Under the pieces are notes generated by a model. The model did no database searches, had not been told where the DNA came from, and was given only the letters and a program-made list of their open reading frames with translations. From positions 8,956,411 to 9,020,410 of the forward strand of contig CAJINV010000004.1 in the NCBI GenBank assembly GCA_905178155.1: a stretch of DNA of 64,000 bases. Reading direction: 5' to 3'. This document shows positions 1,057 through 63,157 of the stretch, one piece after another; the stretch's first letter is position 1; each line of letters opens with the position of its first letter. Position numbers and translations under genes: made by a program. The stretch is from Amoebophrya sp. A120 (Eukaryota > Protista > Dinoflagellata).

Positions 1057-3384
1057 ATGGCCACCACAAACGTACAAGGCCCCCCCAAAGGTGCCCCCGC
1101 TGGTGCCCCCAGTGAACAATCTACGACCACCTCTGTCGAGCTCTTCGTGAGGGTTTGTGAAAAAAAAGAGGTCCAAGACTGGTACTACCCCGACGACGAA
1201 CGGTCCGCCGAGTGGAACGAGGAGCACGAAAAGATCGAGAAACAGATCAAAAAGCAGTTCGAAAGGCTCGGGTGCGAGATCACACAGTACAAACGGGAGT
1301 TGAATCACGCCGGGAATGAGTTCGCGACCGTGTCCTTCGAAAAAGAGGAAGACCAGGAATTTTTCCTCATGGCCTGCAAGCGCGAGCATTTTCGGAGCAA
1401 ACTCTCGCCCAACCCGTATCCTGTGCAAAATAAGTATCGTACTCATATAAATGCAAGTCTTGCATTACAAATCTTGTTCTCAAGGCAAATCCGCATTACA
1501 AATTTCATTTCTCATGCTGAGAAAATTTGTAATGCATTTATACGAGTACGATAACGATACTCATACTTTTGCAATGCATAACCCGGACTACACGTCGATC
1601 TGCGTTTTCGGAAAACACCACCACATCACCGAGGCGGTGCGGACCTTGCGGGTGGCGAAGGAGAAAGCGATGTCTGCGGTTTGGTTTCTCCAGGAAGAAA
1701 CGACCCTTCATAACCAACCGTCCGACGCTGTCATTGTGGAGGAGGAAAGGGGGGACGCGGAATACCGGCAGCGGGTCTTGCGCGCGGCCATAGATCACGC
1801 GAGGAAAAAGGTGGACGAGGCTGTTGAGAACAACGGGAAGGACTTTATTCCGCAACCGGTGGCGGACCACCTCGCAAAGGAGATTAAGGTTGCGCAAGCG
1901 ACTTACCAACAGAATCGGTTGTTGATTATCGATCTGGAAAAAGTAGTAGCTCCGGCAGAGGTGGAGGAAAAAGCCGAGGGAGGAGCGGCTCCAGGTACTG
2001 TATTTGCATTATGCTTTTTACTCATCAAGCCATTTTTATTTTTTGTCATGCTGAACCTGAAGATAAAAAAATAATTCTAGTGCTCCACCTTTCGATGTAT
2101 AGAAGTACGCGACGCACCGTGAGGACTAGTCGTCGACATTGGAAATAACTGAACTTGACAGGTGCCACCGAAGAATCAGATGAGGTTGGGCCGGGACGAG
2201 CAACAGCCGCGGCAGTCGAGTCTCCACAGCAGCTTGCACCGGGAAAGAGCGCGGATCTACTTAGCACTCCTGACGAGCAGCCAGCTCTGGTTGGCCCGAC
2301 CCAGGACGAGGCGCACAGCCGTGCAAATGATCCGGGAGACTGGGGAAGAAGTTGCTTTGCTGCTAGAGAAGAAGTACGGGACTGTATTTCATCCGAAGCT
2401 GTGGAGGTTTTTTCCAAGTCCAAAACGACCCGCCGAGAAGATGAAGAGAAACGGGAAGTAGAGCAGCAGCACCAGGAAGTTGTAAAGCGATCGACAAGAA
2501 AGCGACGACGGAGCGGCCTACTTTGTGGTCCGCCCGATGCACCAGAGGATGATCTTCACCCGGCGGCGAAACGGACTCAGCACGAGCGTATTTGTTCACG
2601 GGAGGATGGGACGAGGAGTGGAAGGCGAAGTGGTGCGCCACGATCAGGTACTACTCAGTAATTTCCTAGCTGTTTTAGTTAGACAGGCGAGTGAGACACC
2701 AGCAGTACTTAAGCATGAGATCATCATCTTTCATGCATGGTAAAAATTGCGGAAGCAACTGAGTTGAGTAGAATCTACTGCTTTCCTCTGACTGAAGTTG
2801 AAGACAATCAAAAGTTTACCACACCAGAAGATGAACCATTCGCAGAAGCAGTGAGGACGACAGACGGCGCGACCGAAAAACTAGAAACGGCGACAAGCAG
2901 CTCGGCGTCCCTCTCCCTTGAGTCCCAAATCGATGAGATCCTTGATCTGGAGGCGAGAACCGAGCTGAAAGAACAGCACCACTTGCTCGATGACTGCCGT
3001 GAAAGCCGGGGCTGCAGCAGGAAAGAACTCACTGCGAAAGCCGTCGGGCTGAAGCTCTTCCGAAAGTTTCATTCGCACGACGGCGGGAATAAAATCCAGA
3101 ACGTCCGGCTTTATCTGTGCAAGAAGGCCAGTCTCGCGTGGGCTCGCGCGAACAGGATATGCGAGCTGTTGGGGAGACATTATGGGGAAGATGTAGATGA
3201 TGAAGAAGAAGTAGACGAACGTAACAGGAGGAGCTGTAGTAAGGGTTATTTTGAAGAGCAAGAGAGAGAGTACAAAGAAGTGAAGCTGATGGCAGATTTG
3301 GTTCGAGAAGTTTACACACAGCTTCTGGACGTGGAGCGCACTTCTTGGAAAGAAGGGTCAACATCAGCAGCTACCAGATACTAG
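1057..3384 (+). CDS. Tandem-family protein: RRM-like, helical, low-complexity and SAP-like C-terminal modules
   Basis: ATG 1057; introner 1417-1580; GT-AG introns 1995-2161 and probably 2648-2827; frames join as KLSPNP|DYTSICVF and AAP|GATEE. Confidence 0.7.
1417..1580. mobile_element. Introner family B
   Basis: TIR TATCCTGTGCAAAA.AGTATCGTACTC; TSD ACCCG/ACCCG; frame restored. Confidence 0.9.
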
Positions 3385-4680: not shown

Positions 4681-7600
4681 ATGTCGGCGCCAGATCCGCC
4701 CTACGGCGCATCGGGTCCTCCCTTGTCCGCCCATCAGCTTCTAGAGCACACTAGTGTGGAAGAGGTGGCTATGCAATACAAATTTCCTGCACATGTACAA
4801 AATGCATCACAGATTTCATCAATTTGGAGTGTAAGAATGCTTGTCATGCTAATTTAAGATCGGGGCCAAGTTTTGTCATGCAGAGACCGCATTGGTTTTG
4901 GTACGTGCCTGTGCGGGAAATCTACTGTGGATAGTGGCAGCTAGGTTGGACGCAGCGATCGGGGAAATCGGGGACATCGTCCGCGAGCAAGCCGTATGGA
5001 TTGCAAATATGTCTGAGTCTGGAAAGAACTTGTGATGTAAGCCAGGCAATATTGGGCCGGCGCACTGTCATACATGGCCAAGCGTGACAAGTTTTTGAGC
5101 TGCTACGTGTACCGCGTATTCCGCATGGCAGACTGCGCTTTTGCATCACACACAAAGCGATCCTTTTGCACCTACACAGGACAGAGTTCCGCGTCATGTC
5201 AGACAAGCATGACAAATCTCGCAGTCTTCCAGACCCAGTAGACATATTTGCATTTTATAAGCCGACTCCTTTCTCGAGTCGTTTCCGTCTCCGTATGCAC
5301 TGCAAGAAAACTTGCGACAGAAGTTCTTGCTGCGCAGAGACAGACAGGCGCGCGGCGATGACATTTTGATTCTTTCCGAGGCCTGTTTAGTCGTCCAGTG
5401 ATCACGCGCCTCCGCCTGTAGAATACGCCTTCGCAGATGCCGCCTCATCCTGATTGCATCAACGCGATTAGATACTTGCAGACCAAACAAGAACGAAGCG
5501 AGCATTTTCATATAAGGGGTGTTTTTGTCATCTGTGTAATAATATTGCAACAAAAATCGCAGGAACAAGTTTTCGCAAAAATGCATACGGGAGACCAGGA
5601 CTACACGACCAACCTGCAACTGCGCGCGGGCGTCAGGTCTATCCGAAGCTTTTGGGAGGACGCGCTCGCGCTGGGTGGGAAAGCCGACGAGTTGCAGGAG
5701 TCGCTGGAAACCATCTGCGCCGCGTCCCGGAAGGGAGAAGCAGCGGCCGTAGTTCCCGAGGTGATTAGTAAATGGCTCAGCGAAACCGCGAGTCCAGTCG
5801 TGGACGACTTGAAGAAATATGAGGCGGAACGGCTCTACGTCTCCCTCATTTGTTTGCCGCACAAGGTCAAGGTGCGTAATCCTGTCGGTGCCCCCGTGGC
5901 GGTATTTGCATGACAGAAGTTGTTACAGCCGAGTCGCAGCAAACCTCGTAGAACCCAGCCGCCTCATAACTTTCATGCAGGATCTCCCTCAAGGTCAAGG
6001 TCAAGGGTGAGGCCCCGTGTCAATCCTGTAGTCTTCGTTGTTGTGGATGTTCTTCGACGTCAGTCTTCAAATGAGGGGGAATTGTCCAGCCGCATAAACG
6101 AAAATACAATAACAAAACTACTCGGCGCAAAAACGTCCCCAACTACGACCCACGCGCAAGATGAGAACTCTGCAAGGCAACTGCATATCTTTTGGGACCC
6201 GCGCATGACAAATTTCCCTTTGTTTTTGTAGCGTAGTGCGCGTTTGGCTTTGGTTGCAGGGATAGCCGCATTACAAAGCCATCCGCTTATCCTGTCATCC
6301 GCATTACAAATTATGCTAAAAAAACCCGACGGCTGAGATTGCCTCTTATGGGGATGCGCATGACTACAAATGCGTCTCCCGTAGATTCTAATCTGCATGG
6401 CAATGCTTGGGGGGGATTTTTTTCCTCAGGATAAGAGCCGAGCCGTTCCTCCTGAGAAGGCTGCACGAGTATGAGCGCGCTGCCGCGAGGCGCTTTGGGG
6501 CCCGGCAATGTCGTCACGGGCCGAAAATTATGCGGGGCAAGTGCAAAAACAAACGCGAGTGCGTCAGGGTCAGTGAGTTTGAAAAAAGTTGCAGTCCGGA
6601 ATGAATAAAGCTGAGAAAGTTGCTTGCCTGCGACGGCTCGACTCAGTCCTTTCCGGGACTTTAAGGTAGCGCACGATAATAGAGACTTGCACTACAAAGA
6701 GTAGTAGTAGCTGAAAACGCAAGATAGTCAATCACATGAAAATAACTCGGCAGGTGTTAATATACGCATGACCAGCACTTACAGCTTAAGAAATTGCGCC
6801 GGTTTTTCCGTTGGCGAACGCCATACCTTCGGCGCCTTTCTGAACCCAGAGACACACAAAGAAAGATTTGCACTCCATAGGAACTCCGGGGGATTGGCAG
6901 TGCTGGCACTGCGGCACATATCGCGACAGGTCGGAGACGCACTGCGGAACCATCGAGCAGCTGCGGCAGGGCCGTGGGTGCAAGAATATCTGACAGCAAA
7001 GTCCGCCCATAAACAGTAGAAAAACGCTGCTTGCGTGGCGCAAACGCTTGCCGTGTTGTTTGCATGGCGCAGGCAAGTAGCTTTTTGATGGCCGGCAAAG
7101 CCAGACCATGAGTGAGGCGAAAGCCTGCCGCGCAAAGTTGAGACGTCTGTGACGAAGCAAAGGAACCAGACACCAAAAGAGTTCCTGGCGTTCTTGAATA
7201 GAAGATAAAAGCCCCAGTATTGTCGCTTACAGGGCTGCGCCACAATCACAAGCGTTTCTAGTTCTCTATGGGCGCGCTTTCCTGCAGGATAGAGAAGCCG
7301 AGATACTTTGAGCCGCCGTTCTATGGATGTGTCAGGTTTGAAATCAACAAAGTTGAAATGATTTCTCATGCATAAAATGCGACACAAAGACTGACTCTAT
7401 TGCAGAGGACGCAAAGGAAGCAGATTATAGTGCTGGCAAGGGTCATAAATTGGGTTGCTGGCTAGCATCACATGGGGGAGCCCTCTTGCCCTAAACAGCA
7501 TGACAGACTTGCCTCAGAGGCCAGGAAAATTTGCCATGCGCCGATTGCAAAGTGGGGGTCCAAGTGGTATAGATTTTATGCATGACAAACTATTTCAACT

Positions 7601-10600
7601 TTGACGATTTCAAACCTGACACCCCCATACGTTCGTCCTGAATTCCCGGACCGCCATGATCGCACTATCATATGCAAAAGCGTGCGCGCGGCCCCATATA
7701 TATTCAAGCTATGGGATCAGCATAGACAAGTCGAGGAGCGCTTTCGCGGTTCGAGGATGACAAGTGTGGGCGCGCACTGTAATCATGCCCAGCTAGGCCA
7801 ACTGCGTCACAAAGAACTTTCTCTATTGATCAGCGCATGACCACCCAGAAATTCATCCGTACTGCGACCCTGACCCAATTTGCCTGCCTTGCGGTGCCGC
7901 ATGAGAAGAAAGTGATTGGGGAACACTGCAAATACGTGCGACCACAAGAAAAATCTGGGGCCGCGGATTACCACGCTTATTTTGCACTGGATACGCGCAC
8001 CACTTTGCCGAGGACGTTCCGGCGCCGGATCTGGAGTATTACGCCCCACCACCACGACCGCCGCTCTCCGCGTCCACACCTACCACAGCAACCACTGTGA
8101 GCACGGCGACGAACGGGCTACCGCCACCAGTATCCTGGGGGAAAGCGTTTCCGCCCAAGAGTCAAAGCGGGAACTACGCTAGACAAGCCGCCGCGTTTTG
8201 GCTGTTGCGTGTGACAAGTTTGGAGCCGTTGCGAAATCGTCTTTGGGTAGCGTAGCAGCATGACAAATTTAGAGGAGCCCTATCTTGATTAGAGCATGGC
8301 AAACTCCTACACAGCATGATTGGTGAATGCTCCGCATGGGGATGCCCTTGAGAAAAATTTGGTGCTTGCAAATTTGCAGAGCGAGGCCGTGGTGGAGATG
8401 TTTTTCCTCAGGATAGCCAGGGTTCGTCCGCGGCCGGGAGCAGGACATGTTGGCCCTCGTTCCTCCTTCGCGCCAACTTCTAAACGCGGCCACAAATGAT
8501 CTATCGCACGAAGAAACTGCTTCACCGTAAAATTGTGACGCATAGAAAAATGGAACGCAGAAACAGGAGTATTCATTTCTATATATGTCTCTTGCTATAG
8601 AGTGAGGCAAGACATTGGATACCTAGCCTTGCTGCTTATTTCCCTTCCTAGGATAGTACGCGCATGTCAAGTTTTCTTTACGTGTAACGAACTAGCGATG
8701 CAGAATTTGTAAAATCACTCGAGTAAACGCGAAGCAGCTTTTTCTCAGGATATACTCCATCTTCGCAGAAACTTCTTCCCCGCGGGGGCAGTACCAGCCT
8801 GCACGTGGGCCTTGCGTCAACTAGCGCGGCACCGAAAGCCTCCGCGGCTTGTACTGCCACACCTCGACGTGCTACCACGCCAGCGGTTGCGGTTGCAAAG
8901 GTCTTGCGGTGGCCCGAGTATAATCCTGGTGCGATTATGGAAGGCTCTAGCACTGCTGCAAAAAGCGAGGGGCGAAAAGGTATACGTTGATAAGTATGTC
9001 TTTCTCAGTGCTGAGCAAGCTACGTATGTCGATGAGGACACCGATCATAACAGCGTGGTTTGATGTGTGTAAGTAGAAATTAATATTTCTTCAGTTAATT
9101 TTTCATGTAAGTCCAATGAATGTACTACATGCAGGCTCCGAAACGTGTTTCACCAGTGCGGGGGCTGCTGCCAGAGGACAAGACAAAGACTTCTTCAACT
9201 CGTTTCACGGAACCTATGGCGTTCTCAAATGTTACATTGTTCTCAATTGTTACATAAATTTGTAATGCAAGAACGGCGAAAGTGAAAGGGACAAGATTGC
9301 GCCTTTTGCATTACAGATTTGGCACAGATTTACATGCTGTTTAGCCCTTCGGATATTTGTCATGCGAAGCAGCTTAATCGTGGCGATCTTGGTGGTAAAT
9401 TTGCATGACAAATCATGTAACAGGTGGTAAATTTGCATGACAAATCGTAGCAGCTTGGCCACATTTGTCATGCAGTTTTTCGTTTTGGTCATACTCTCTG
9501 GTTTTTTCCTCTCGTGGCAATTTGTACCTGGTGTCCCTGTTTGTCATGCAAATCCTACCATCTACGCTGTTTCTGGCCTCTTGCATGTTGGTCCTTGGAC
9601 GTTGGTGCCACGATCGCAACTCCTTTTCCAGGACCTTAGTTTCCCGCCTGCTACAACCTCGTGCTTCCACTTTTTTGGATGGTGTTTTACTGGGGGTAGA
9701 ACTGTGTCATAGTTCCTGCTTCAAACCCTTTTACTTTTTAATTTGGTTCCCTCGGTGCTGAGACAGGGAGTTTGCACAGAGTTATTTCTACCTAGATAAC
9801 AACCAACTCACGTCGCAGCCGTCCCAGGAGTTTCGGTTGTTGTCTCTCGGTAGAAATCACGCTGTTCAAAAAATTTCTGTTTTGGAGTTTACCGGGTACG
9901 CGGTTAAGAGTTTGTCGACGTAATTTACAAAGGGACGCCCTGCCCTTAGTTTCCCAACATGACAAATCATGTAACAGCTGAGAATGTAACAGTTGAGAAC
10001 GCCATAGAACCCTGGAGGCGGGCGGGGAGCAGAGACACCGGATTTTTGGCTTGGCGCGGCACATAGAGACGCCCGTTTTCGTGAGTTGCGACAGCGAACA
10101 CAGTATGTTATACGGGTTCAACAATAATTTTTGTGCGGAGGACGAGCAGGACCTTAACATCAGCAAAAACACCAGTACAACTACCAGCCTCCTGCCCGAG
10201 CGCGAGACCGAGGTGAAAAGGATGCAACACTTCTCCGCAATACAGAGGGCGGAAGACGCCGAGACGAACTGCCAGCCGAAAATAACCCGCAATCAGGACC
10301 ATCAAAACGCGAAGCTGCAGAACAAGTACCTGAGTCATTTTGTCACGAAGGAGACGTGTGAGTTTTTCCACGCCATTCCCTTTGAGCAGGCGAAAGAAAG
10401 GCTCCGTTCCATTTTGACCGAGGTCAAAACGACTATCGCGACTGCGGAACAGCTTGCGAAAGCGGCCACACAATCGCGGCTGGATCTTGCGCAGGCGGGC
10501 CCGGACATCAAAATTGCGGCGCTACAAACGTCAAAGGCGGTGATGAAAAAACAGTTGGACGGCATGCAGTGGCTGGCGCCGAAGCTGGGTGTAGTCCTAA

Positions 10601-11325
10601 AAGCGGCGGGCAAAGCGCTGGACTTTCTCACCTTCATTGTCGACGCGGAAACAGGCACTGGGAGTAGTACAACAAGCACAGGAGGAGGAGTTGTTGCAGC
10701 TGCACCCACGAAAAATTTGCTATCGCAGCAGAGCTGCAAGAACCATCAGCAATTGCAGGTGCACACGACGTCGATCAAGGTCGCGAGTAGAGCTTGGCTC
10801 AGGGGAACCGCGCGGCCGCAACTGCAGGAGCTGGCAGCGGCGTGGGAGATGAAAGTGAAAGACCAGGTCGAAGGTATCCTGAGTAAAAACGTCCCCAGAC
10901 CAGAGTTGTAATGCAGATTTGCAAAGATAGGAAGACTTGTAATGCGCATCCCCATGAGAGCCATTGATTTCCAATCGTGTTTTGGAATTTGTGATGCTGT
11001 GAACAGGATGCGCAGATGAATCTGTGACGCAACTGCACTTGCTAACCTGCACTACACTGCGGAGTGCAACTTGTCATGCGTGACTCACAAAACTCCTAGG
11101 TTTGTGCTGCGAAATCCCCATCCTGACTCTGGTGTGGGGACGTTTTTACTCAGGATAGAAGGAGAAGAATCTGCGCTGCGAGAGCTGCTCCGAGACGAGC
11201 AGGAGCTGGTGGACCGGCCCGCCCAGGGGAATAAATCAGCGTGGTCGTTATGGGATTTGGGAAAACTTCAAGTTGCGATTGTGTATATCAAGCACGGACG
11301 AGAACGAGCAGGAGCACGACTTTGA
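4681..11325 (+). CDS. Tandem-family protein with RanBP2-type zinc finger (model unresolved at about 5820-6435; could be two genes)
   Basis: Continuous frame 4681-5817 and 6439-11325 after removing introners and GT-AG intron 8980-9134; GDWQCWHCGTYRDRSETHC...GCKKPR at about 6889-6986 plus 7297. Confidence 0.55.
4770..4933. mobile_element. Introner family K
   Basis: TATGCAATACAAATTTCCTGCAC...GTGCGGGAAATCTACTGTGGATA; TSD GTGGC. Confidence 0.85.
4995..5259. mobile_element. Introner family A
   Basis: TIR TAT..TGCAAATATGTCTG.GTCTGGAA; TSD AGCCG. Confidence 0.9.
5294..5587. mobile_element. Degenerate introner
   Basis: TATGCA...GAAAACTTG / CAAGTTTTC...TGCATA; TSD diverged, but element + 5 nt restores frame. 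Confidence 0.6.
6529..6879. mobile_element. Degenerate introner (A-like)
   Basis: TATG...GTGCAAA / TTTGCACTCCATA; removal + 5 nt gives GPKI|PGDWQC. Confidence 0.5.
6987..7291. mobile_element. Introner family M
   Basis: TATCTGACAGCAAAGTCCGCCCATA / TATGGGCGCGCTTTCCTGCAGGATA; TSD AAGAA/GAGAA. Confidence 0.85.
7322..7629. mobile_element. Introner family H
   Basis: TIR TATGG..GTGTCAGGTTTGAAATC..CAAAGTTGAAAT; TSD CGTTC. Confidence 0.92.
7666..7993. mobile_element. Introner family L
   Basis: TATC..TGCAAAAGCGTG..CGCGGCCCCA imperfect TIR; TSD CGCAC/CGCGC. Confidence 0.8.
8131..8415. mobile_element. Introner (M-like)
   Basis: TATCCTG.GG.AAA / TTTTTCCTCAGGATA; TSD ACCAG/GCCAG. Confidence 0.8.
8502..8752. 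mobile_element. Introner family I (degenerate)
   Basis: TATCGCACGAAGAAACTGCTTC / GAAGCAGCTTTTTCTCAGGATA; TSD TGATC/TACTC; frame restored. Confidence 0.75.
9215..10006. mobile_element. Introner family D carrying an internal insertion of about 550 bp
   Basis: TIR TATGGCGTTCTCAA.TGTTACATT; TSD GAACC; 792 bp versus about 235-250 bp for other D copies. Confidence 0.9.
10875..11157. mobile_element. Introner family C
   Basis: TIR TATCCTGAGTAAAAACGTCCCCA.ACCAGAGT; TSD GAAGG. Confidence 0.95.
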
Positions 11326-11424
11326 CTAAAGAGACTTGCGTTATAATTTGTTCTAATTCGTATGTTTATGTTTTGATTTTTTGGTACGATCATGCTGTGA
11401 AACTGTGACGCTGTTCCAACGTTA

Positions 11425-51494: not shown

Positions 51495-52187
51495 GCAGGT
51501 GGTGAAGCATTTTTAACGTCGCTGCGCATGGAGGTGTAACATTGAATGGTCCGGCGTTTGTTCTGCGCATTTCTTTCTTGCACCAGCACCAGCTCGTCTG
51601 ATCGCCGCAGCAGGATCTGTGAAAGGGCTGGAGACCTAGAACGGCAAGAGTCAGAGTGAAAAAGCGCACGAGCTGCCAAACAAAGGGTCGTAATCCCATT
51701 CAGATTTTTGTGTTGGTCGTGAAGGTGGACTCCGGTTTGATAAAACAAAGAAGACTTAAGCTACATCTTCATAAACACACGTTGCAGATTCAGCAGCACT
51801 GGTGCAGCTACTGCTTCTGACCATGACGGGTCGAACACTTCCCAGGTTCGATTTTGCTTCCTATACGTGATAAAATACGATGCTGCCACAAAAACAAAGT
51901 GTATTCGCCTTCGCCTTCGTTGTTATGCATCTTTTCGGAAGTAGGACTGAAACAGTTTACTCGAGGTCGGCTAGAAGTGAGCTCTATGTGAGAGAAAAAC
52001 AACATGAGCAAGTCGAGCATGAGAAACCCTTTGCAAGGGACAATGCGCAGAGCGAGTCTCTTCGGTAGCGTCTACAAGTAGACAGACTGACAAAGAGAAA
52101 ATAAACTCAATCTTAAAAATACAAGCAAAGCACCAGGAAGATGGTGTGCGTGTCCTTTTGGTCCTAGTAGGTCTGGGCGTCGCAACA

Positions 52188-55100
52188 ATGGTACTATCGT
52201 CGCGTGCGCAGCTCTCTGCGCTTGCTGTTGTACTACCTGTCGCTGCGGCGGCGCAGATATTCGGAAGAGTCGCACCAACGAACGCTGTGGCGAAGGTCGT
52301 GACAACCACCCTACGTGCAGCCGGTTATTTATCCGGTAGTGCAGCAGCACACAGAACAAGTACTAGCAGCAGAGCACAGGCTGCTGGTGCTGCTCTAGAT
52401 GAACACCAGCTGTCGGGTACAATTCTTGCGCAAGAACTTCGACAACACGATGCTGATCCGGAAGAGAAACTTCTTCCCACGACGAGTTTGGAATTTGTGG
52501 TCCAGGATTTTTGTAGCGACGAGCAAGAAAATGAAAATGAAAACAAGAACGAGCTTTCTTTCCATCAGAACCAAAACGCCGATGTCGTGGGACGAGCGTC
52601 TGTTTCGCCACTACACCCGCCCTCGTTCGAAGGCCAGGAGGATGAACATGTCGCGGCCAACTATCATCTTTTCTCCGGAGCAGATGAACCTGCGCACAAG
52701 ATGATGAACCTTGTCCCCTGGCCGGCGAATTTCGAGGCAAACAGCGCCCAGCTCCCCGTGCAGTGCGAGCAGCCGGACTGGTTGTTACGGAAGGACCAAC
52801 TGGTGCTGCCCGTGAACGAGGAGAGGAGCTTCTTGTCGAGCGTGAATGAAGCAACAAGCACACCAACATCAAAAGCCAGCGCAACAACTAAAGTTTCGGC
52901 CACTCTGGTGATGACGCTGTTTCTCGGGCCGGACGGGCCGAACGACTGGAAAAGAACTCCGCCAAGTGGGCAAACTACGCATGTAGCGGCAAATAAAAAT
53001 CTTTACGCCGCTGCGGACTGGCTGCGGGCGCTCTTTGCCGCGAACGTGCAGGTCCTTCGTCGGTTCTATCCTGTGCAAAAGTATCGCACTCGTATCAATG
53101 CATTATACAAATTTCCTCAGCATGAGAAATTTGTAATGCGGATTTGCCTTGAGAAGAAGATTTGTAATGCAAGACATTGACATGCATTTATACGAATACG
53201 ATACTGTTGCACAGGATAGGTTCGGCCACGGGCTGATCTTGCGCACGGACTTCACTCCGGGGGACTTCGACGGGAAAACGCATTTAAAGTCCTGGGAGGT
53301 CGACAGCGAGGACTGCAAGAAGAAAAATTTATCCCCAGCGGACTGTGCCAAGCAGTACCAGCGACTCAATTCCTTCTTCGAGAGGCCGCTCATGGTAGCA
53401 GACTACCTAAACTTACGAAAAGCTGGAAGTGGATCTGCTGGAGATTCGGATTCCAGTTCCACCGCCCCTGAAGATCAACAGTTCCGCTTCACCCACGTGT
53501 TCACGCTGGATGCGGACGCCGCGTTCGTCAGCATGAGTATCGACTCGGTCCGGTTGGCGGCGTGGAATTTGGCGCGGGCGGGAAAAGACGTGTTTGCCGC
53601 CAATGAAGACTGGCAGGAAGAGAAGAACAAAGCGGGGTGGGACCAGGACCAGCTCTGCCGCGGGGTGAACAACGGGTTGTTGTTCGCGGCGAACACGGCC
53701 TTTTCCCGAACGTTCTTCCGAGATCTATGGGATCATGATTCTCAAATGTTACATTCTCAACTGTTACGTGAATTTGTAATGCAAGAATGGCAAAAGTCAA
53801 AGAATGAAGGGAGGTTGCTCCTGTAGCATGACAAATACCGCACAGATTTAGGGGCTGTTTAGCCTTCGTAAAATTTGTCATGCGACGTAGCGTCCCTGTG
53901 TGGATGCTGGTGCTCATTTTGCATAACAAAAAATCATGTAACAGTTGAGAGTGTAACGTTTGAGAGTCCCATAATACATCTTCGCGGCGCACCAGCGCGG
54001 CCCGCGCGCGCAGGCCTGGGAGATCGAGCCAACGATCAGCCTCGTCTGCGCCTCGAACGACCAAGAGTGCGTGCAGAACGCGATTCCCCGGCTGCGACAG
54101 CACTTTCTCACGACGCGTGGCCAGTTTTGGAACCGGGGCCGGTTCGCGAACGACGAAAGCGCGCCGCTTGTGAACGCGACAGCGACCGCTGGTGGAGCAG
54201 GGGAAACAACGCACATCGTGCACTACATGAACGCCGACGGGAACATGAAGATTGCGGAAGAGGATTTCTGCGACCCCGGGTTTTTAGTAAAGCCGATCCA
54301 GGAGGAAACGAAAGTCGCTTTGGGAGTGTGCAGCAGCAGGAAGACCACGAGTCAAGGAGGAGAGGAAAGTGCAGAGGAAGTTGTACAACAACTAGATTGG
54401 CAGCCGCCAGCACAGTCGTGCGTCGGCCAAGGAACTAGTAAGCCACTTGGTTCCGGCAGTTCTGTGGGGGAGAGCATGAGTGGTCCTCACAGTCACGAAA
54501 CGTCGAAGCAGCAACGTCGCCTCCGCGTCGAGGAAATCCGAGTGGACGAGGAAGCTGACACAATTCGATATGACTTGCTCAAACGTTACAATCTCAAACG
54601 TTACATAAAGAATCTGGAATTTGTTGCATGATGACCATGACAGACTCGCACAGCGTTCCAACTTTTGCAATACAAATTTCGCGAGATTGTCTTGGGGTTT
54701 AGGGGTCCGGAACTTGTCATGTGCAATCCTATGAGACTTGGCTAGATCATGCAATCTTGCATCACAGATTTCCATATTCTATTCGTAACGTTTGAGATTG
54801 TAACACCTGAGCGGGTTATATTCGAGCGGGTGGTCCTCCGGATTTTTACCTCCAAACAAGCCCTGCTGAAGAGGAGACGACAGCTGTGGAGCTTGTTGAC
54901 ACGAGTGAAAGAAGTTTTTCCCCGACGACGGAACAAGGGGAAGCGGTGCCTGCTGCAAGCGGTACAACTGGTAGTGCAGCTGTCATCGCTGCAGCTGTTG
55001 GGCATGATGAAGATGAAATGCGTGCTGGGACATTGTCCGTGTTCGTCACGTCCTCTTCGTCTTCACACGACGAGCGCCAGCCTTTGTCCACCACCCTGGA

Positions 55101-58100
55101 CGATGACTTCCTCACCGCAACCCCCCCTTTTTGCAACGGTTGCTGCATCGGTCCGGCCTCGGAAGCCCCGTATCAAAAGTAAAAATGTCTGGGTCTGGAA
55201 ACTTGTGATGCTGGGTGGCGTCTCATGATGAGGCTACAAATGCTGGCTCAGCATGACAGGTTTCTGCGCTCCTAGGTGTTGCCTACTCTGCATGACAAAC
55301 GGCGCTTCTGCATCACAGAAAAGCGGAGCTCTTGGGTAACGTGCATGACAGATTTAAGAGTCATGCCAGACAAGCATGACAAACATGAATTCTTCCAGAC
55401 CCAGACATTTTTGCACTTGATACCCCGGCGAACGTAACCAACATCGGAGATCTCTCCTACCACGCGCGTTGCCTCGATGTGCACAAGTGCGCGGCGGCGG
55501 AGGTTCCTGGCGGAGCTGGTGCTCTTGGTGGTACGACGAATCCAGATGAGCAGCATGATCAGCGCAGGAGGACCAAGTACGCCTTCGTCCTTACCCACAA
55601 GGGGGTTCTGCCCCAGCCGGAGAGGAATACCACGGAATATCAAATGCAAAAGCATCGTACTCGTAAGTATAAATGCATTACAAATTTCCTCAGCATGAGA
55701 AACAAAATCTGTCATGCGGATTTACCTTAATAAACGAATTTGTAATGCGTGACTGCAATTACTACGAGTGCGATACTTTTGCACAGGACACGGAATGGAT
55801 TGACCTCATGTTCCCAAACCTTCGCAGCATGGAGCTGGCCCGGCAGGGAATACTGAGACAAGGAAAATCAGCGACGAAAGATATCGAAATCGACATTCTC
55901 CTCCTCGTTGCGCTGAACCGCGGCATGACGATCGGGGTTGACGCAAAGTGGTGGGAGAAAACTGTATCTTACCTGCAAACCGAACTGCGCCGCATCGCAC
56001 CAACTACGGTCGTGAAGCGCGTGCCGTGGACGGTGTATGCGTTGCAAATATGTCTGGGCGTGGAAGGATGCAACTTGTGATGCGCATTTCACAACACATA
56101 AAAATCTGTCATGCATAAGAAGCAAAAGCTGCCCACTTTTTGTCACCAAAATTGGGCATTTGTCATGCGGATCCGGCATTGCGGAAGCTCCTCGAAACCT
56201 GTGATGCTAGAGCTTCCATGCCAGACCTTCTGTGTCATGCAAAAGCAGCATGACCCTTCCATACCCAGACATATTTTCATTCAATACGGTGCCGGAGGAT
56301 GCGAAGTTTGACCGGAAGGAAAGCTGGTGCGGCGAGGTCGATTTTATCCGGCTCAATATGAACTGCAAAAGTATCGTACTCGTATGAATGCATTACAAAT
56401 TTCCTCCGCATGAGAAATAAAATTTGTAATGCGGATTTACGATAAGAAAAAAATTTGTAATGCAAGACTTGCATTTATACGAGTACGATACTTTTGCAGT
56501 GGATACTCAACGCGTTCAGCGAGACGGACTACGACGCCGTCGTCTACTATGGGAGTGTCAGGATCGAAATTGACAAAGTTGAAAAAATAACTTGTAATGC
56601 ATAAAATGCATGACGCGACTTACGTGTGTTGCAGCAGAGCAGGCAAGTGAGGCCGATCGTAAGCCCGTTTGGGGTTAGAGCTCGGGCCGCTAAAGTAGCA
56701 TGAGAAAATCTCTCTTTTTTGCATAAACAGCATGACAAACTGGATTTAGGCACCACCAAAATTTGTCATGCGCCACTTGAAAACGGGGTTTCAACTGGCA
56801 TCCAATTTATGCATGGCAAATCATTTCAACTTTGTCGATTTCGATCCTGACAGTTCCATATCTACTACGACCGCGATGTGGAGCTGCAGGACACGGGCGG
56901 AGAAAACCTGCTGGCGCTGTTCGAGTGTGTGGCGAAGCAGGACGTGTTTTTGACGGCCACGGGTGGGCTGAACGAGCCAATAAACGTCGGCTTTTTCGCG
57001 ATGAAGCCGAACCGAAAACTGCTAGACGTCGCCCTGGAGTTTTCCAAACTTGCCGACTACAGCGACGACACCGGGTGGGCGGGCAGTGGCTGGAGTCCGG
57101 CGCGCATGTTTTTGGTGAAGGGGAATGAAGAGGAAAGCCGTGGTGGAATCGGTGAAGGCGAGCGCGGAGAAGCTTCTGGAGGTGCTAGTCTTTACCTACC
57201 TGCTTCGTCTTCGACGGGGGCAATAATATCTTCTTCTTCGGGCATAAGAAGTACAGATACTGATTATACAGCAGGAGACGCCGACCGCACTGGTAGTACC
57301 ACATCAACTCAGCAAGAAGACAACCTTCATCTGCTGCGCGAAGGAGCCCCCGGCACCGTGGAAACAAGCGAAAATGACGGGAGCAGTATCATGGGCGGAG
57401 GGAAAGATACAATGAATACCACTTCGCCTTCGCGCGTTAGGAACACGGATTCGAATACTGTGATGTTGTCCGCGGAAGGCGGTAGCAGTAGTACTGATGC
57501 TCATGCTACAGGAACAAGAGCCTCTCGTCCCGGCACCTTCCTGTTCGAGGAGGACGAGCAAGATTTTCTGCGTCAACAGCAGGCGACGACCTCGATGGGC
57601 ACTAGAACCACGACACGGCACGGCTTTGATTCCTTATCAGGCAAAAGCGAAGACCAAGACCACCACCTCGAGCACACGACCAGCAGGTCCTCGTTGTATA
57701 AGCGCGTTCTCCTCGACCCAAGTCTAGTCACCGCGATCCGTCAAGACCGAGACAAATACGAAGCATTTCTGAAAAAGAAGTACTTCGTCGGGGGCGAGTG
57801 CGGACAGGGCTATTTTCTCACGCTCCTCTACCACCTGAGCAATCCCGTCGTGAAAACCGCCTATGAAAAAGCGGGTTTCCCCATCGAAAATATAAAACCC
57901 TTCTCGGTCGATCGCTGCCAGTGGAACTACCAAACCAACAACGGGCACGTCTGCGAGAAAATCCAGTCCAGTTGCGACAAAGTGATCGCGCACCACAAGC
58001 CAGGAAAGGAATTCTACGCCCCAGGCCAGGACGTTTCGAAGGCGGGCGACCAATACGGGCAATGCCTCAAACGCGGCTACAAGCGGTTGGCGGCGGGCAG

Positions 58101-61100
58101 AGCAGCGGCGGGGAGTTTCCTTTCATCTACGTCTCGCAGAAGTAGTGCTTTTTTGGAAGATGACAGCGTATGCATTGCAAATATGTCTCGGTCTGGAAAG
58201 TTGCAACTTGTAATGCTAATTCTGGATCGTGAAAAAATCTGTGTTGCATGAATGCCGAAAGTTGTCCGCTTTTGACCAAGTCGAGAGGAAGTGTCTCATG
58301 CAGGATAGGCATGACAGGGATCTCACAGAATCTGTCATGCTAGGTCCTGCATTCCAGACGACACGAATCATGGCAAATCTGCATCACAAGTTTCGGAATC
58401 TTCCAGACCCAGACATATTTGCATTTGATACAGCGGGATGTTGAACAAAATCGCGCTGAACGTGTTTTACTACGTGGAGAACCCGGACGACAAAAACTCG
58501 CTATGACCTGCTCAAACGTTACAACCTCAAACGTTACAATAGAATTTGGGTTTTGTATTGCATGATGAGCATGACAGACTCGGACAGCATTTCCCTTTCT
58601 GCAATACAAATTTCGCCAGATTGTAGTGCGGATTGGCACTCCAGAACTTGTCATGCGCAATCCTAGGAGAGTTGGCTAGGTCAGTGTTTGCTGTCCCCCG
58701 GGCTGAGGTCACTGTTGTGGGTTTCTGGCGACTTGTGTGGTGCAGGAAATTTTGCCACCACCACTGTCTGGGCCCCGTCTGTTCTGAGGCTGTGCAGGTC
58801 GGGTTACCTGGTCGGGTTGGTTGTCGGGTCGATTCTCTCTATGCCCCTGCCCCTTGATGCCTGCCACTGGGCGGATTGGGAGCGTTTTCACGGCGTCAGC
58901 CCGTTTCTAAGAGCTGAAACTATATGACGCGTGCTGTCTGCTCTTAGACATTATGGGGAGGATTCCTCTTCTCTGTTCCCCCCAGGGCATTGCCTCATCG
59001 TTGGCGCTATCGTGTGACAGCTCTTAGTTGCCGTGGTGCTTTCGGTGGGATGGACGTCCGGTGTTGCTTCGACACTCTTGTGTTGTTGCATTTGTGAATG
59101 CGAGGGCAGTGGTGGACTGAGGTTGCTGGAGTCCTCCGTAAGGACGGCTCCAAGTTAATTTCTGACTACTCCGCTTCCTTGTGCCTCTGCTTTAGTACTA
59201 TTTTTAGTGCTTTAGCTAATAGGCGTCCCCCTCGAATCTCACCTCCAGGACTTCGGGGACCCCACTTTTCCAAGGTTCTTGGTTGTGGATGGTTCCTCGA
59301 GGTCTTTGTGTCGTCTGGGTATTCTTTGGTGCACTTCTTGCAACACAAATTCCAGATTCTATTGCAACGTTTGAGATTGTAACACCTGAGCAGGTTATCC
59401 TCGCGGAAGCACTTTCTGAAGTCCTTTCCCTTGAACCTCGAGACCTGGCTGCTGCACCTCCGGTCGAGCAGAGTGGAGCCGCGGGTGTATTGAGAGGAAA
59501 AATCCCCCCTCCCCATATTGAAAAGGTATGGCTCCGGAAATTTGTGTTGCTGATTTGAGGTCACAAATCACGTCTGTCTTGCAAGAAGACAAGGGCAGAA
59601 GCTTCCGCCATATTATGGAAGCGGTTTGTCATGCCGTTGGGCCTAAAGGGAGGCCGTTTGCCATGCTGAGCAACTAGACCCATACGCCCCCAGCTAGCCT
59701 GCGGATCTGGCCGCCATGCCTTTCTGCAACACAAATCTGATTTGTGTATCCAAATCCAGCATCAGAAATTTCGTTTTGATATGGGGAGGGGGGATTTTTC
59801 CTTTTGATAGGGTGATTCAAGTAACCGATGCGACAGTGCGGACGTGGATCCCCGATGTACTATCCAAGAAAAAAAGTGTGCAAGTGTAACTCTGTAGGAA
59901 GAGCAGCATCACAGATTTGTTTTGCATTACAGAAAAACCTGTCATGCCTGGCTAGTACTGGTGAAAATACGCACGCAGCATGGCTATCAGATGCACTTGC
60001 AGCATGACAAGTGTAACGGTCTTGCGTTTTTTGCATCACAAATATACTCTCACACAGCTTTTTTCTTGCATATGTACCCGAGCAGTTTTACCGATTGCCA
60101 TATAGCCAAGCAAAGTCGGATTTTGTCCGCTACGCGCTCCTGTATTACCATGGGGGGATCTACCTGGACGGGGACTTCATCGTGCAACGGGATTTGCACG
60201 AGAACATCTTGGAAGCCCTGTCCGGAGCAACGACATTTGGTGGCGTCGCAGGAATAAACAGCGGAGGTGGAAATCAAATTCAAAATACCAGAAAACAGTC
60301 GTTCTTTCCCATCGAGCTGTTGTCCTACAACTCCGCCGGGCAGAACTGCAAGGGGATGAGGCCGCCGAATTTCAAGCCGACCTTTTCTTTATGAACTGCA
60401 AAAGTATCGTACTCGTATAAATACATGACAAATTCCCTCAGCATGAAAAAAAAATTTGTAATGCGGGTTTACCTTGAGAAAAAAACTTGTGATGCACGAT
60501 TGCAATACGAGTACAGCACGATACTTTTGCACAGGATATTCTTCCAATTTTCTTGGTGCGACGAAGGGGAGTTTGTACATGATATCAAATGGAAAAATGT
60601 CTGGGTCTGGAAGAGGAGAAGTTTTTCATGCACATTTTCCATGATCCATGATGTCTCTGTTGTATGCAATAGCATCACAGATTTTTTGAGCGCCTATCGA
60701 TGCGCGTCCTGCATGACAAATGCCTTCTCCGCGTAGCCACATTTGACTCCTCTTGCTGCTCATGCAATACAGATTTTTTGAGCATCCAAATGCAGCATCA
60801 CAAGTTTGGCTCTTCCAGACCCAGACATATTTGCAATCCATACATGAAACGGGTCTACGACCTGCAGAAGCAAACGCTGACAACCCCCTGCGAAACCCCG
60901 GAAAAAAACGTGTGCTGCTCCGGCCTAGATCGGAAGAAGCAGTGCCACATCGGTTGGGGCGGGCTGGGCGAGGGAATCTCCACCGGCGGGGAGATCGCGT
61001 TAGCTGCGGCTGATCAGGAAGTTTTGGAACAGTCGGGGGTGGGAAAGGAGATTCGGGAAAACCCGCTGGGGCTCATCTATAGAAAAGACAAGACGAGTGC

Positions 61101-63157
61101 TGATCCTGACGGGAGTAGTAGTGCCACGACCGGCCTGGTGAAGATATCGAGTTCCACAACTTCCACTTCAAGTACACTTTCGCGAAATAGTCCGGTCACC
61201 AACGGTATACAGCAATTTCTAACGACGACTACCGGGATGCCGGGTAGACGTAGCAGCTCTAGCGGTGCAATAAATTACCGAGAGGTTTATGATAGTGACC
61301 AAACAGCAATATCGGAGAATGAAGATTCCGAAATGCAGTTCAAAATCCAGGGCATTGTCGCCTGTTTCCAAAACGAGACAGAATTCGCCGCGTTGAACCC
61401 GCAGTTGCTCGGCGGTAACATGTATCAAGTGCAAAAATTTCTGGGTCTGGAAACTTGTAATACTGCGTTGGGAATAGTGAATGCCCTGCAATGCACAGCC
61501 AAGCATGAGAAGTATCTGCGCTTCTTTGTGTTGCGTCTTTCGCATGACAAACTGCGGTTTTGCATGAAGGGCAAGAAAAGGGTCTCTTCTTGGACACGCA
61601 TCACAAACTTTTTGGTCATGCCAGAAAAGCATGACAAATCTCGCAATCTTCCAGACCCAGACACTTTTTCATTTGATAACATGACGGATGAAAACAGTGA
61701 GGAACGAATCGCCTTTTTCCGAGACGTGCACGCGACGGTTAAGTCCGAGCAAGAGGTGCGGAACGCGCTAGGCCGGACCGCGTACCACATGTTCGCCTCC
61801 AACGGCCTGCCGGAGTGGCTATTGTGAGGAAAAATCCCCCCTCCCCATACCAAAAAGGGGCACTACTGAAAATTTGTGATGCTGATTTGTGACCGCAAAT
61901 CGTCCCTGTATTGCAAGAGGGCAAAGCCAGAGAATCGGCCGCGTTGCCCAAGCACTTTGTAATGTTGTATCGCCTACAGATGATATGCCTGCCTTGCTAG
62001 GTGCCTACAGCAAAACGCCCCTACTCAGGGGCTGCATCTGCCTGCAGTCCTCGACTGCTAGACAGATTGGATTTGTGTACACAAATCCCGCATCACAGAT
62101 TTCGGCTTTGATATGGGGAGGGGGGATTTTTCACTTTGATAGTGGCACGAGAAAAGTTGCGAGGCGTTCGCTACGGACCATTCCACGGTGTTGGGAAAGA
62201 TCTACAGCTCGGCACTGATGCTGCAACAAGAAGACCACGGCGAGGAAACAACATCAAGTCGAAATAATGCCACTGCCAGCACGACGACGACTTTGTCCAA
62301 AATCTGCACTAGAGACGTGATGTCTGAAGCCGTGGTTGCAAAGTCGGTTACGCTGCACCCGGAAATGTCTTTCCCATTGGTGCAGAAGATGCCGGACGAG
62401 GAGGCGGAAAACAAGCAGGGGTCCTCGGAAGTAGGAGCAGGTCATACTACTGCTCCTGCACACAGTGTCGCCGCGTTTGTGGAAGTGGTCGTGGGTGGGC
62501 AAGAAGATGAGGAGGAAATGACAACAGATAGTCCTCTATCCCACGAAAAAACTGTTTCACTGTGAACTTGTGATGCATAGAATGGAAAACAGAACTATTT
62601 GTCTTGCTACGCCTGCAAGGCATTGGGTTCTTAAGCGTGTTTTCCCTTTGAAAGCGCGCACGGCAAATTTTCTGTGTCATGTGTAGCAAACTTGTGATGC
62701 GGATCTTGCAAGACCATCACAGTGAAACGGTTTTTTCGTGGGATATCCTCGTGCGCGACAGAACAGTGGAGAAATCGAGACTGATCTTCATACTGCATCT
62801 CTGCCTGCTCCTTCTGCTGCAGCTCCCCCTGCTGCAGCTTCTACCGATGAACCGCAACCGCAGATCAAGATCATGCACCAAAAGTCAATAACGATAACCC
62901 CGGCCGAGACAAGTTTTCTACAAGAGAAAGTGAAAAGCACCGCGCCGGAACTGGAAGTAGGACCGCGGCCAGCATCCGGACCAGACACGACGGAGAAACC
63001 GCGTCTCCTCCGACGGGCGCTGGACGTGGCGGAGGACGTGGATGGCTTATTTTTCGAGGGTAGTACGAAGATGACATCATCGTCCCGTCAATCCGAGAGA
63101 ATAAAGTCGATTGACCGTGCTGGCAGCGAGCAGGAGGGGACGGAACTGTTGGATTGA
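52188..63157 (+). CDS. Secreted/Golgi tri-domain glycosyltransferase (GT34-like, GT8-like, GT32-like), about 2074 aa after removing 17 introners
   Basis: Hydrophobic N-terminus; THVFTLDADA...GVNNGLLF (GT34-like); DFIRLNAFSETDYDAVVYYDRD...INVGFFAMKP...GQG (GT8-like); AKSDFVRYALLYYHGGIYLDGD...SNFLGATKG (GT32-like); 10970 - 4745 = 6225 nt, divisible by 3, and each junction is in frame. Confidence 0.85.
53067..53218. mobile_element. Introner family B
   Basis: TSD GGTTC; RRF|GHGLIL. Confidence 0.95.
53726..53973. mobile_element. Introner family D
   Basis: Family D TIR; TSD diverged (AGATC/ATACA); removal + 5 nt gives RDL|FAAHQ. Confidence 0.85.
54569..54820. mobile_element. Introner family F
   Basis: Family F TIR; TSD TTCGA. 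Confidence 0.93.
55171..55422. mobile_element. Introner family A
   Basis: TSD CCCCG; near-identical to 12735-12986. Confidence 0.95.
55638..55790. mobile_element. Introner family B (ACA end)
   Basis: Family B TIR; TSD CGGAA. Confidence 0.92.
56036..56286. mobile_element. Introner family A
   Basis: Family A TIR; TSD CGGTG. Confidence 0.93.
56357..56505. mobile_element. Introner family B
   Basis: Family B TIR; TSD CTCAA. Confidence 0.95.
56548..56860. mobile_element. Introner family H
   Basis: Family H TIR; TSD TCTAC; splits the DxD region VVY|YDRD. Confidence 0.93.
58169..58430. mobile_element. Introner family A
   Basis: Family A TIR; TSD CAGCG. Confidence 0.95.
58502..59399. mobile_element. 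Introner family F carrying an internal insertion of about 650 bp
   Basis: Family F TIR (ATC end); TSD CTCGC; 898 bp versus 252 bp for the other two F copies. Confidence 0.9.
59488..59809. mobile_element. Introner family G
   Basis: Family G TIR; TSD GGGTG. Confidence 0.93.
59861..60072. mobile_element. Introner family O
   Basis: TATCCAAGAAAAAA / TTTTTTCTTGCATA; TSD TGTAC. Confidence 0.88.
60390..60538. mobile_element. Introner family B
   Basis: Family B TIR; TSD TTCTT. Confidence 0.93.
60583..60842. mobile_element. Introner family A
   Basis: Family A TIR; TSD CATGA. Confidence 0.95.
61423..61678. mobile_element. Introner family A
   Basis: Family A TIR; TSD ACATG. Confidence 0.93.
61820..62141. 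mobile_element. Introner family G
   Basis: Family G TIR; TSD GTGGC. Confidence 0.93.
62537..62745. mobile_element. Introner family I
   Basis: TATCCCACGAAAAAAC.GTTTCACTGTGA TIR; TSD TCCTC. Confidence 0.95.

Follow-up and report, generated by a model that had tools for sequence, protein, structure and literature searches.

The window analysed here, a 64-kilobase (kb) stretch of Amoebophrya sp. A120 DNA taken at its full length of 64,000 nucleotides (nt), raises the question of how genes can be expressed when their coding exons are interrupted by dozens of inverted-repeat elements that begin with TAT, end with ATA and offer, with few exceptions, none of the borders of an ordinary intron. An earlier note on this DNA had proposed that such elements act as introns not of the GT-AG kind, and that a dedicated machinery, either hairpin-guided RNA splicing or a DNA excision like that of ciliates, removes them alongside an ordinary spliceosome. 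The system itself is already known: these are the introner elements of A120, described from the same assembly by Farhat et al. (2021; BMC Biol 19:1; PMC7789003), and the note was right in pointing to a report of non-canonical Amoebophrya introners with inverted and direct repeats. According to that work, more than 60% of A120 introns are non-canonical, and about 30,000 repeated introns account for 68% of the non-canonical ones and for 17% of the genome (PMC7789003). The inverted repeats were described as TAT, followed by 7 less conserved nt and then at least three A; the introners form hairpins and have non-canonical junctions backed by RNA sequencing beside GT-AG introns, U1 was not found, and the mechanism was left unresolved (PMC7789003). 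The direct repeats were given as 3-5 nt (5 base pairs, bp, in the example figure), with a splice position relative to the hairpin that was variable or unresolved (PMC7789003). Few known intron systems are stranger: in this eukaryote, hairpin transposons that are removed without GT-AG supply the majority of the introns. The explanation that we favour as a whole, and in which we have good confidence, is that the elements of the window are these published introners, i.e., transposons removed at the RNA level as the element plus 5 nt, with cuts that would fall 1 nt before the element and 4 nt after it (the 1/4 register).

The final list comprises 55 TAT...ATA inverted-repeat elements of 149-898 nt, which make up 23.6% of the window, in agreement with the roughly 55 elements with 5-bp duplications that the note had counted. 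It combines relaxed scans, a search with the elements themselves, and the introns required by an annotated protein, P0002. A strict scan, which imposed no rule on the ends and asked for a 16-nt inverted repeat (at least 13 matches) beside an exact 5-nt repeat, found 22 pairs in the window against 0-2 in each of 20 shuffles; 20 of the 22 start with TAT and end with ATA. The same end rule is also valid in 20 random loci of the genome. Single-base end variants, which had been announced too, occur in the final list as TAC at two starts and as ATG (twice), ACA and ATC at four ends.

The target duplication is strictly 5 bp. Its two copies agree at all five positions in 38 of the 55 elements, at four in 10 and at three or fewer in 7. 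Moreover, among 145 TAT..ATA inverted-repeat pairs from the window and 20 random 10-kb loci, an exact 5-nt repeat flanks 69, while repeats of 2, 3, 4, 6, 7, 8 and 9 nt flank 9, 1, 0, 1, 1, 0 and 0 pairs, respectively, the 9 pairs with a 2-nt repeat being at chance level. Base use is flat at all five duplication positions in 66 elements with an assignable gene strand. A depletion of T at the last duplication base (2/46 in the window) was dropped, being absent in these 66 elements.

Clustering of whole elements gives about 12 groups. Several families do exist, as the note had held in counting about 15, but they are not mutually unrelated, as it had supposed: an end consensus (T1 A2 T3 S4, G9, A11-14, T16/T18/C19) is common to all groups, and some groups have internal cores in common. 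In a logo of 92 ends, T1 A2 T3 are nearly invariant and A11-14 strongly conserved. The best explanation of their nature is that they are short, non-autonomous DNA transposons resembling miniature inverted-repeat transposable elements (MITEs), with a 5-bp target duplication, inserted in coding exons. Indeed, they have terminal inverted repeats, a target duplication of fixed length and many dispersed copies, which are found at 90-96% identity on many contigs; some insertions lie within others. The longest one of the window, of 898 nt (58502-59399), consists of an element of about 250 nt with an insert of about 650 nt at its positions 180-848, and this insert occurs alone, at 90% identity, at C3:69347, C1:5225974 and C1:14317598 of the assembly.

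That these elements behave as introns, removed precisely as the element plus one copy of the duplication beside GT-AG introns of the same gene, is supported in several ways. In the window, open frames of the + strand lengthen only when the element plus 5 nt is removed, and not with +0, +4, +6 or +10, which bears out the statement that removal of an element and one duplication copy restores the frame. One stop-free frame of 1042 codons spans 10 element junctions, including the junction peptides VVY/YDRD and FS/SNFLG that had been pointed out (the slash marks the junction), and a Gly_transf_sug DXD region lies in exon 60017-60391 of the same gene. Joined, element-free models were used to count frames and junction peptides, and database searches were done exon by exon. 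The elements of this part of the window are the following; here as in the other lists all elements are on the + strand, and flanks are written left/right.

56036..56286, + strand: element, flanks CGGTG/CGGTG; search with the elements themselves
56357..56505, + strand: element, flanks CTCAA/CTCAA; strict scan, 1042-codon frame
56548..56860, + strand: element, flanks TCTAC/TCTAC; junction peptide VVY/YDRD; strict scan
58169..58430, + strand: element, flanks CAGCG/CAGCG; missing from the X3 contig
58502..59399, + strand: 898-nt composite element ending in ATC, flanks CTCGC/CTCGC; missing from the X3 contig
59488..59809, + strand: element, flanks GGGTG/GGGTG; missing from the X3 contig
59861..60072, + strand: element, flanks TGTAC/TGTAC; missing from the X3 contig, present in X1 contig record 7
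60390..60538, + strand: element, flanks TTCTT/TTCTT; junction peptide FS/SNFLG; missing from the X3 contig
60583..60842, + strand: element, flanks CATGA/CATGA; missing from the X3 contig
61423..61678, + strand: element, flanks ACATG/ACATG; in the X3 contig 61677 follows directly on 61415, so that 261 nt (256 + 5) are skipped
61820..62141, + strand: element, flanks GTGGC/GTGGC; search with the elements themselves, 1042-codon frame

Contigs of two public runs, X1 and X3, were placed on 56230-62180, a stretch with perfect duplications only. Of the two runs, X3 is taken, as a guess, to be RNA. One of its contigs (record 9; 5616 nt, depth 22) covers 56861-58162, 59400-59482, 60072-60384, 60841-61415 and 61677-61813, and its unplaced stretches between these pieces measure 67, 45, 37 and 0 nt, which is exactly the remainder after removal of the element plus 5 nt for seven elements (58169, 58502, 59488, 59861, 60390, 60583 and 61423). 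Micro-exons of 37-67 nt left by adjacent elements (59405-59487, 59815-59860 and 60544-60582) are kept in this transcript-like contig; exon definition over micro-exons of 37-67 nt would be unusual.

A second layer of evidence comes from the gene of P0002, whose protein was mapped onto the window. Of its introns, 21 are a TAT (or TAC)...ATA element plus exactly 5 nt and two are ordinary GT-AG introns, so that the claim of a removal running beside ordinary introns stands. Eight of the 21 are decayed copies that the window scans had missed; the exon 14740-15822 corresponds to residues 1142-1502 of the protein at 100%. Searches of annotated proteins with other single exons yielded no match, very likely owing to a length filter.

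4681..15822, + strand: gene of the annotated 1502-amino-acid protein P0002, 24 exons and 23 introns
4770..4933, + strand: element, flanks GTGGC/GTGGC; P0002 intron is element plus 5 nt
4995..5259, + strand: element, flanks AGCCG/AGCCG; P0002 intron is element plus 5 nt
5294..5587, + strand: register-fixing element, unlike flanks CTCCG/CGGGA; intron start only 1 or 0 nt before TAT
5818..6096, + strand: register-fixing element, unlike flanks AGAAA/AACGA; intron start only 1 or 0 nt before TAT
6119..6433, + strand: register-fixing element starting with TAC, flanks AAAAC/AGAGC; intron starts 1, 0 or -1 nt relative to the element start
6529..6879, + strand: register-fixing element, unlike flanks AAAAT/GGAAC; intron starts 3, 2 or 1 nt before TAT
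6987..7291, + strand: element, flanks AAGAA/GAGAA; intron starts 4 to 0 nt before TAT allowed, 5 excluded
7322..7629, + strand: element, flanks CGTTC/CGTTC; P0002 intron is element plus 5 nt
7666..7993, + strand: element, flanks CGCAC/CGCGC; P0002 intron is element plus 5 nt
8131..8415, + strand: element, flanks ACCAG/GCCAG; P0002 intron is element plus 5 nt
8502..8752, + strand: register-fixing element, flanks TGATC/TACTC; intron starts 2, 1 or 0 nt before TAT
8980..9134, + strand: canonical intron GTATAC...GCAG; P0002 exon map
9215..10006, + strand: 792-nt element, flanks GAACC/GAACC; P0002 intron is element plus 5 nt
10875..11157, + strand: element, flanks GAAGG/GAAGG; one of two elements with an alternative GT-AG reading
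11249..11543, + strand: register-fixing element, unlike flanks GTCGT/CCCGC; intron starts 3, 2 or 1 nt before TAT
11669..11934, + strand: element, flanks TGAGA/TGAGA; P0002 exon map
11983..12137, + strand: element, flanks CTGGA/CTGGA; P0002 exon map
12421..12701, + strand: element, flanks ACGTA/ACGTA; RNA fold -118.5 kcal/mol, z -10.45; end helix starts with U1-A(last)
12735..12986, + strand: element, flanks AACAA/AACAA; no GT/GC-AG placement; P0002 exon map
13339..13573, + strand: element, flanks CGCTA/CGCCA; P0002 exon map
13633..13857, + strand: canonical intron GTAAGT...ACAG; P0002 exon map
14200..14421, + strand: element, flanks AGCCG/AGCCG; P0002 exon map
14511..14735, + strand: element, flanks GAAAG/CAAAG; P0002 exon map

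Removal is thus backed by the X3 contig for 7 elements and by the annotated P0002 for 21: DNA and assembly keep the elements, and the transcript-like contig and the annotated protein are without the element plus 5 nt. Outside the window, a GroEL/Hsp60 homologue (L010 225-2730, G000:C3:67847-71515) illustrates the same precision. It carries a 1454-nt TAT...ATA element at 759-2212 with the duplication GTGGA, which splits the conserved motif AEDV/EGEAL; alignment of the two neighbouring exons to solved GroEL chains (E 1e-37 and 1e-34) stops at residue 253 on one side and resumes at 255 on the other, residue 254 being encoded by the codon that the element interrupts. The same gene has canonical introns at 225-313 (GTATTT...AACCAG) and 2522-2730 (GTATTA...GCCAG). 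A Pfam scan of its exons (L010:328-758 and L010:2219-2572) gave no family despite structure matches of E 1e-34 to 1e-37, and hence the Pfam negatives of this analysis are weak.

None of this can be traced to displaced canonical borders for most elements, since 51 of the 55 have no GT-AG, GC-AG or AT-AC option at any equivalent placement of the junction; of the other four, two admit a GT-AG and two an AT-AC reading. The duplications AACAA, CCGCC, TCCTC and ACTAC, which had been singled out as allowing no GT/GC-AG by any sliding of the boundary, do behave in this way.

Where exactly would the cuts fall? With a perfect duplication, six junction placements lead to the same messenger RNA (mRNA), and unlike flanks let the protein decide. 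In seven P0002 introns of the list above, the numbers of intron nt allowed before TAT are {1,0}, {1,0}, {1,0,-1}, {3,2,1}, {4..0}, {2,1,0} and {3,2,1}, in their order along the gene, and the value 1 alone is common to all seven sets. From these sets we infer that the intron would read N + TAT...ATA + NNNN, with cuts 1 nt ahead of TAT and 4 nt beyond ATA. The flanks of these seven introns share, as we count them, only 1-3 of 5 bases and the intron is removed all the same, which makes removal independent of the repeat and, in turn, argues against copy-choice or reverse-transcriptase artefacts. A register that is kept with a decayed duplication also implies that the sites would be measured from the element ends or the end helix and not from the repeat, and any proposed machinery must reproduce this offset of 1 nt and 4 nt from the end helix. 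The predominant non-canonical sites published for A120 are GT-AC, CT-AG, AT-AG, GT-CG, AT-AC and TT-AG (PMC7789003); in all of them T is the second intron base, as the 1/4 register predicts. For perfect duplications, the published site table may reflect the aligner's habit. In another strain, A25, the repeats begin with TTA and TT-NN junctions predominate.

The ends themselves are under constraint. Among copies of one family that were chosen solely by their internal part, TAT is preserved in 30 of 30 and ATA in 28 of 30, while divergence from the consensus reaches 16-21% at positions 4-12, 11% at positions 13-35 and 24% in the interior. Arm positions 4-7 are non-complementary in several copies, so that the three end pairs are conserved as sequence and not merely as a helix. 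The minimum-energy fold pairs both ends in 19 of the 21 P0002 elements, with a helix that runs from the first U and flanks that are single-stranded. Furthermore, copies of the same family lie in both orientations within + strand genes (6:9, 10:4 and 3:5), and the seven elements that the X3 contig lacks include both orientations. Orientation is thus irrelevant, and the signal must be symmetric, i.e., it must lie in the inverted repeats.

With its single candidate register, the start of the intron comes to resemble a canonical 5′ splice site minus its G. The four canonical introns that were mapped start with GTATAC, GTAAGT, GTATTT and GTATTA, and under the 1/4 register an element intron would start with N-UAU-S, which equals positions +2 to +4 of the canonical 5′ site without its G (and +5 when S is G). 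The genome holds at least 8 copies of U6 small nuclear RNA with a canonical ACAGAGA box. A search of the genome for U1 gave no match; since U2, published as present, was missed as well, the U1 negative adds no independent evidence.

We would therefore picture the following sequence of events only as a proposal. The element would be transcribed together with its host gene, its ends would pair in the RNA, and the cuts would fall 1 nt before and 4 nt after the end helix. A relaxed spliceosome would make them, reading UAU at +2 to +4, while the hairpin would hold the 3′ cut beside the 5′ site, so that G+1 and AG would no longer be needed. As the repeat is an inverted one, its A-run close to the 5′ end would entail a U-run some 15-20 nt upstream of the 3′ cut, whatever the orientation. 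Whether a relaxed spliceosome is the cutting machine seems to us evenly poised. More tentative still is the full form of this idea, in which a fixed asymmetric 1/4 register would be set by the ends or the end helix whatever the flanks, the state of the duplication or the orientation, with ends that mimic a 5′ splice site and a 3′ site measured by the hairpin; it is possible, and we would not lean on it. If true, it would amount to a mode of splicing in which neither end dinucleotide matters. Separately, the last A of the element, which lies 5 nt upstream of the 3′ cut, was considered a candidate branch point (cf. CTAAC-CAG in one canonical intron); this is unsupported, and it was rejected because elements ending in ATG and ATC exist, one of the latter being correctly removed.

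Several points weigh against the explanation that we favour or against parts of it. The register rests on seven introns of one gene model, which is assumed to follow real transcripts. The invariant TAT and ATA could serve the transposase and not splicing, and the end variants ATG, ACA, ATC and TAC are tolerated, the element 58502-59399, which ends in ATC, being removed correctly. X3 is an RNA run by our guess; the raw RNA runs X9 and X10 (2026, same species label), which are probably from another strain, place only 11 and 2 partial reads, all of them on one 34-nt piece of inverted repeat, and junction support here is at the level of contig and protein. As to the transposon side, no autonomous partner was found. 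Genome-wide, 15 matches to the rve integrase core (PF00665), among them C13:1158987, C2:6256400 and C180:1549, lie in open frames of 366-3639 amino acids and are candidates for autonomous partners or retroelements; a search for the RAG1 family gave no match, its positive controls being without match too; and the longest elements (1.3-1.7 kb; L010, L012 and L036) showed no recognisable transposase frame on inspection of L010 and L012, made without a Pfam scan. The role of the spliceosome is a prediction from sequence. To our knowledge, an arbitrary first and last intron base is unprecedented for spliceosomal catalysis. Finally, the genome paper favours a mechanism distinct from the usual spliceosome (PMC7789003).

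This last argument also speaks for an explanation that dispenses with the spliceosome altogether, which we consider unlikely though well worth keeping in mind: an endonuclease would read the end hairpin and cut 1 nt before and 4 nt after it, and an RNA ligase of the tRNA-splicing type would join the exons. A register fixed relative to the helix end and independent of flanking sequence would suit such an enzyme, as would the irrelevance of element orientation, the lack of base preference at the duplication positions (n=66), and a helix that starts exactly at the element ends. The nonconventional introns of euglenids offer a parallel: their ends pair at asymmetric offsets, their repeats resemble duplications, their borders are non-canonical, and they are released in circular form with no lariat. 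On the other side, no candidate enzyme is known for this route; the flanks, to judge by inspection of the layout only, lack the exon-intron helices that mark a bulge-helix-bulge site; RNase III-type enzymes cut within duplexes and not in flanks; and the GUAU-like start of the intron would be left as a coincidence.

Direct repeats around a hairpin are the classic setting for copy-choice deletion and for template switching by reverse transcriptase, and one may ask whether the elements are ever present in productive RNA. A polymerase jump over a perfect 5-nt repeat, or a template-switch artefact, would yield exactly the element plus 5 nt. We hold this to be very improbable: the seven introns with dissimilar flanks are still removed, and in a single register; proteins including the GroEL homologue require removal in vivo; and the joined form in X3 has a depth of 22 against about 7 for contigs internal to elements. 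Moreover, some X3 contigs run from an element into the flanks of other loci, so the elements get transcribed, unless these contigs are DNA carry-over.

Even less credit is due to excision from DNA in the expressing cells, the second of the two routes that the note had envisaged. TA-containing ends and the precise loss of one duplication copy recall the eliminated sequences of Paramecium, and the library type of X3 is not on record. However, X1 behaves as genomic DNA, and its contigs (records 2, 7 and 8) cross exon-element borders at a depth of 43-52, against 39.5 for an exon-only contig; as contigs drop rare variants, a minority of excised DNA could escape this comparison. The assembly holds the elements throughout. 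The share of sampled words in X3, 0.53, equals the exonic fraction of the stretch and, together with element sequence at lower depth, is what a transcriptome with some precursor would give. We know of no split between germline and soma in Amoebophrya.

The idea that splicing takes place at cryptic GT-AG sites close by, or that the interrupted genes are dead, can be set aside almost entirely: two elements are readable as GT-AG and two as AT-AC, but removal of exactly the element plus 5 nt is required by the transcript-like contig as well as by the protein model, +4, +6 and the other tested offsets break the frames, frames stay open through up to 10 junctions, and the GroEL motif is restored to the residue.

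The preferred explanation, of published introners removed from RNA, can also be judged by comparison with other systems. The elements of the window fit the A120 introners in their TAT and A-stretch ends, in short direct repeats at the exon/intron borders and in transcript-backed non-canonical junctions. Relative to the published description, what is found here is a duplication of strictly 5 bp, a single 1/4 register, both orientations, and TAT/ATA ends that stay invariant in diverged copies; these four points are refinements of that description and not a new system. They add constraints on any account of removal, namely the 5-bp duplication, orientation independence, selection on the TAT/ATA ends, and removal despite a decayed duplication. 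A later survey counts A120 among the introner-richest cases and adds that its introners include inverted-repeat elements with integrase-like frames (Gozashti et al., 2025).

The nonconventional introns of euglenids (Milanowski, Guminska and co-workers; PMC11282704) resemble the elements in their non-canonical borders, in end pairing near both intron ends and in asymmetric offsets, as well as in duplication-like repeats, a likely MITE origin, the presence of normal introns alongside and a removal that is unresolved (PMC11282704). They pair CAG/CTG at +4-6 and -8 to -6 (PMC11282704), whereas the A120 elements pair UAU/AUA at +2-4 and -7 to -5. Circular excised products, released once the conventional introns are gone, are a feature shown in Euglena, and the two lineages are unrelated. 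The MITE-derived introns of Fritillaria borealis (Henriet et al., 2019, via PMC11282704) are likewise transposon-derived, species-specific and a non-GT-AG majority class. Fritillaria keeps a preference for AG-AC and AG-AT, attributed to an adapted U2 spliceosome (PMC11282704); in the A120 elements, by contrast, only intron bases 2-4 are fixed and both end dinucleotides vary.

The introners of Micromonas, Aureococcus and Polarella (Huff, 2016; Roy, 2023; Gozashti, 2022, 2025) are similar in being inverted-repeat transposons with target duplications that create introns genome-wide. Those of the Micromonas/Polarella type bring or create GT/GY-AG, often through the duplication, which 51 of the 55 elements of the window cannot do. 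The internal eliminated sequences of ciliates are also short, transposon-derived insertions in genes, with TA-containing ends and precise removal, which takes place there from DNA; unlike them, the A120 elements are kept in the DNA-like run X1. IStrons and self-splicing group I/II introns share with the elements the logic of a mobile element that leaves the transcript so that the host gene survives. In contrast to these, an Rfam scan of the 64-kb window gave no family at gathering score, hence no ribozyme, and elements down to 149 nt are too small for one.

The remaining elements of the window lie outside the gene of P0002 and the stretch 56036-62141 listed above:

1417..1580, + strand: element, flanks ACCCG/ACCCG; relaxed scan; frame open across the junction
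18378..18529, + strand: element, flanks GCCGC/GCCGC; relaxed scan, frame test
18588..18908, + strand: element, flanks AACGA/AACGA; strict scan, frame test
20440..20773, + strand: element ending in ATG, flanks TTCAG/TTCGG; relaxed scan, frame test
28935..29225, + strand: element, flanks CGACC/CGAGC; relaxed scan, frame test
29284..29518, + strand: element ending in ATG, flanks AATTC/AATTC; strict scan, frame test
35873..36100, + strand: element, flanks GAGAG/GAGAG; relaxed scan, frame test
37844..38095, + strand: element, flanks AGCCA/AGCCA; relaxed scan, frame test
38157..38732, + strand: 576-nt element, host of a nested element, flanks TGCGC/TGCGC; relaxed scans
38300..38554, + strand: nested 255-nt element inside 38157-38732, own flanks TTCGA/TTCGA; strict and relaxed scans
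39897..40217, + strand: element starting with TAC, flanks CCTCT/CCTCT; relaxed scan, frame test
40287..40442, + strand: element, flanks CCGTC/CCGTC; relaxed scan, frame test
42285..42566, + strand: element, flanks GGCGC/AGCGC; relaxed scan, frame test
43790..44068, + strand: element, flanks AGGAG/AGGAA; relaxed scan, frame test
44484..44703, + strand: element, flanks CGCGG/CGCGA; relaxed scan, frame test
50807..51045, + strand: element, flanks ACTAC/ACTAC; relaxed scan; no GT/GC-AG placement
51093..51360, + strand: element, flanks CCGCC/CCGCC; strict scan; no GT/GC-AG placement
53067..53218, + strand: element, flanks GGTTC/GGTTC; strict scan; an alternative GT-AG reading exists
53726..53973, + strand: element with unlike flanks AGATC/ATACA; removal of element plus 5 nt joins two frames, each open for more than 133 codons
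54569..54820, + strand: element, flanks TTCGA/TTCGA; relaxed scan, frame test
55171..55422, + strand: element, flanks CCCCG/CCCCG; strict scan, frame test
55638..55790, + strand: element ending in ACA, flanks CGGAA/CGGAA; relaxed scan, frame test
62537..62745, + strand: element, flanks TCCTC/TCCTC; strict scan, frame test; no GT/GC-AG placement

Some further observations can be added. The X9 reads match the window at 60581-60614 (34 nt) and then continue into unlike sequence, which suggests that elements related to this piece are transcribed in another strain. Several genes contain W-x-C-x2-C...C-x2-C motifs of the RanBP2 zinc-finger kind (19699-20235, 13812-14201 and 30464-31084); for 19699-20235 the Pfam match is sub-threshold, with 17.5 bits against a cut-off of 27. 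In two other loci of the genome, L023 (2998-3553) and L030 (6694-6995), tandem arrays that gave many false inverted-repeat matches are built on a unit of about 38 nt with the palindrome CCCCGGGG, unrelated to the elements.

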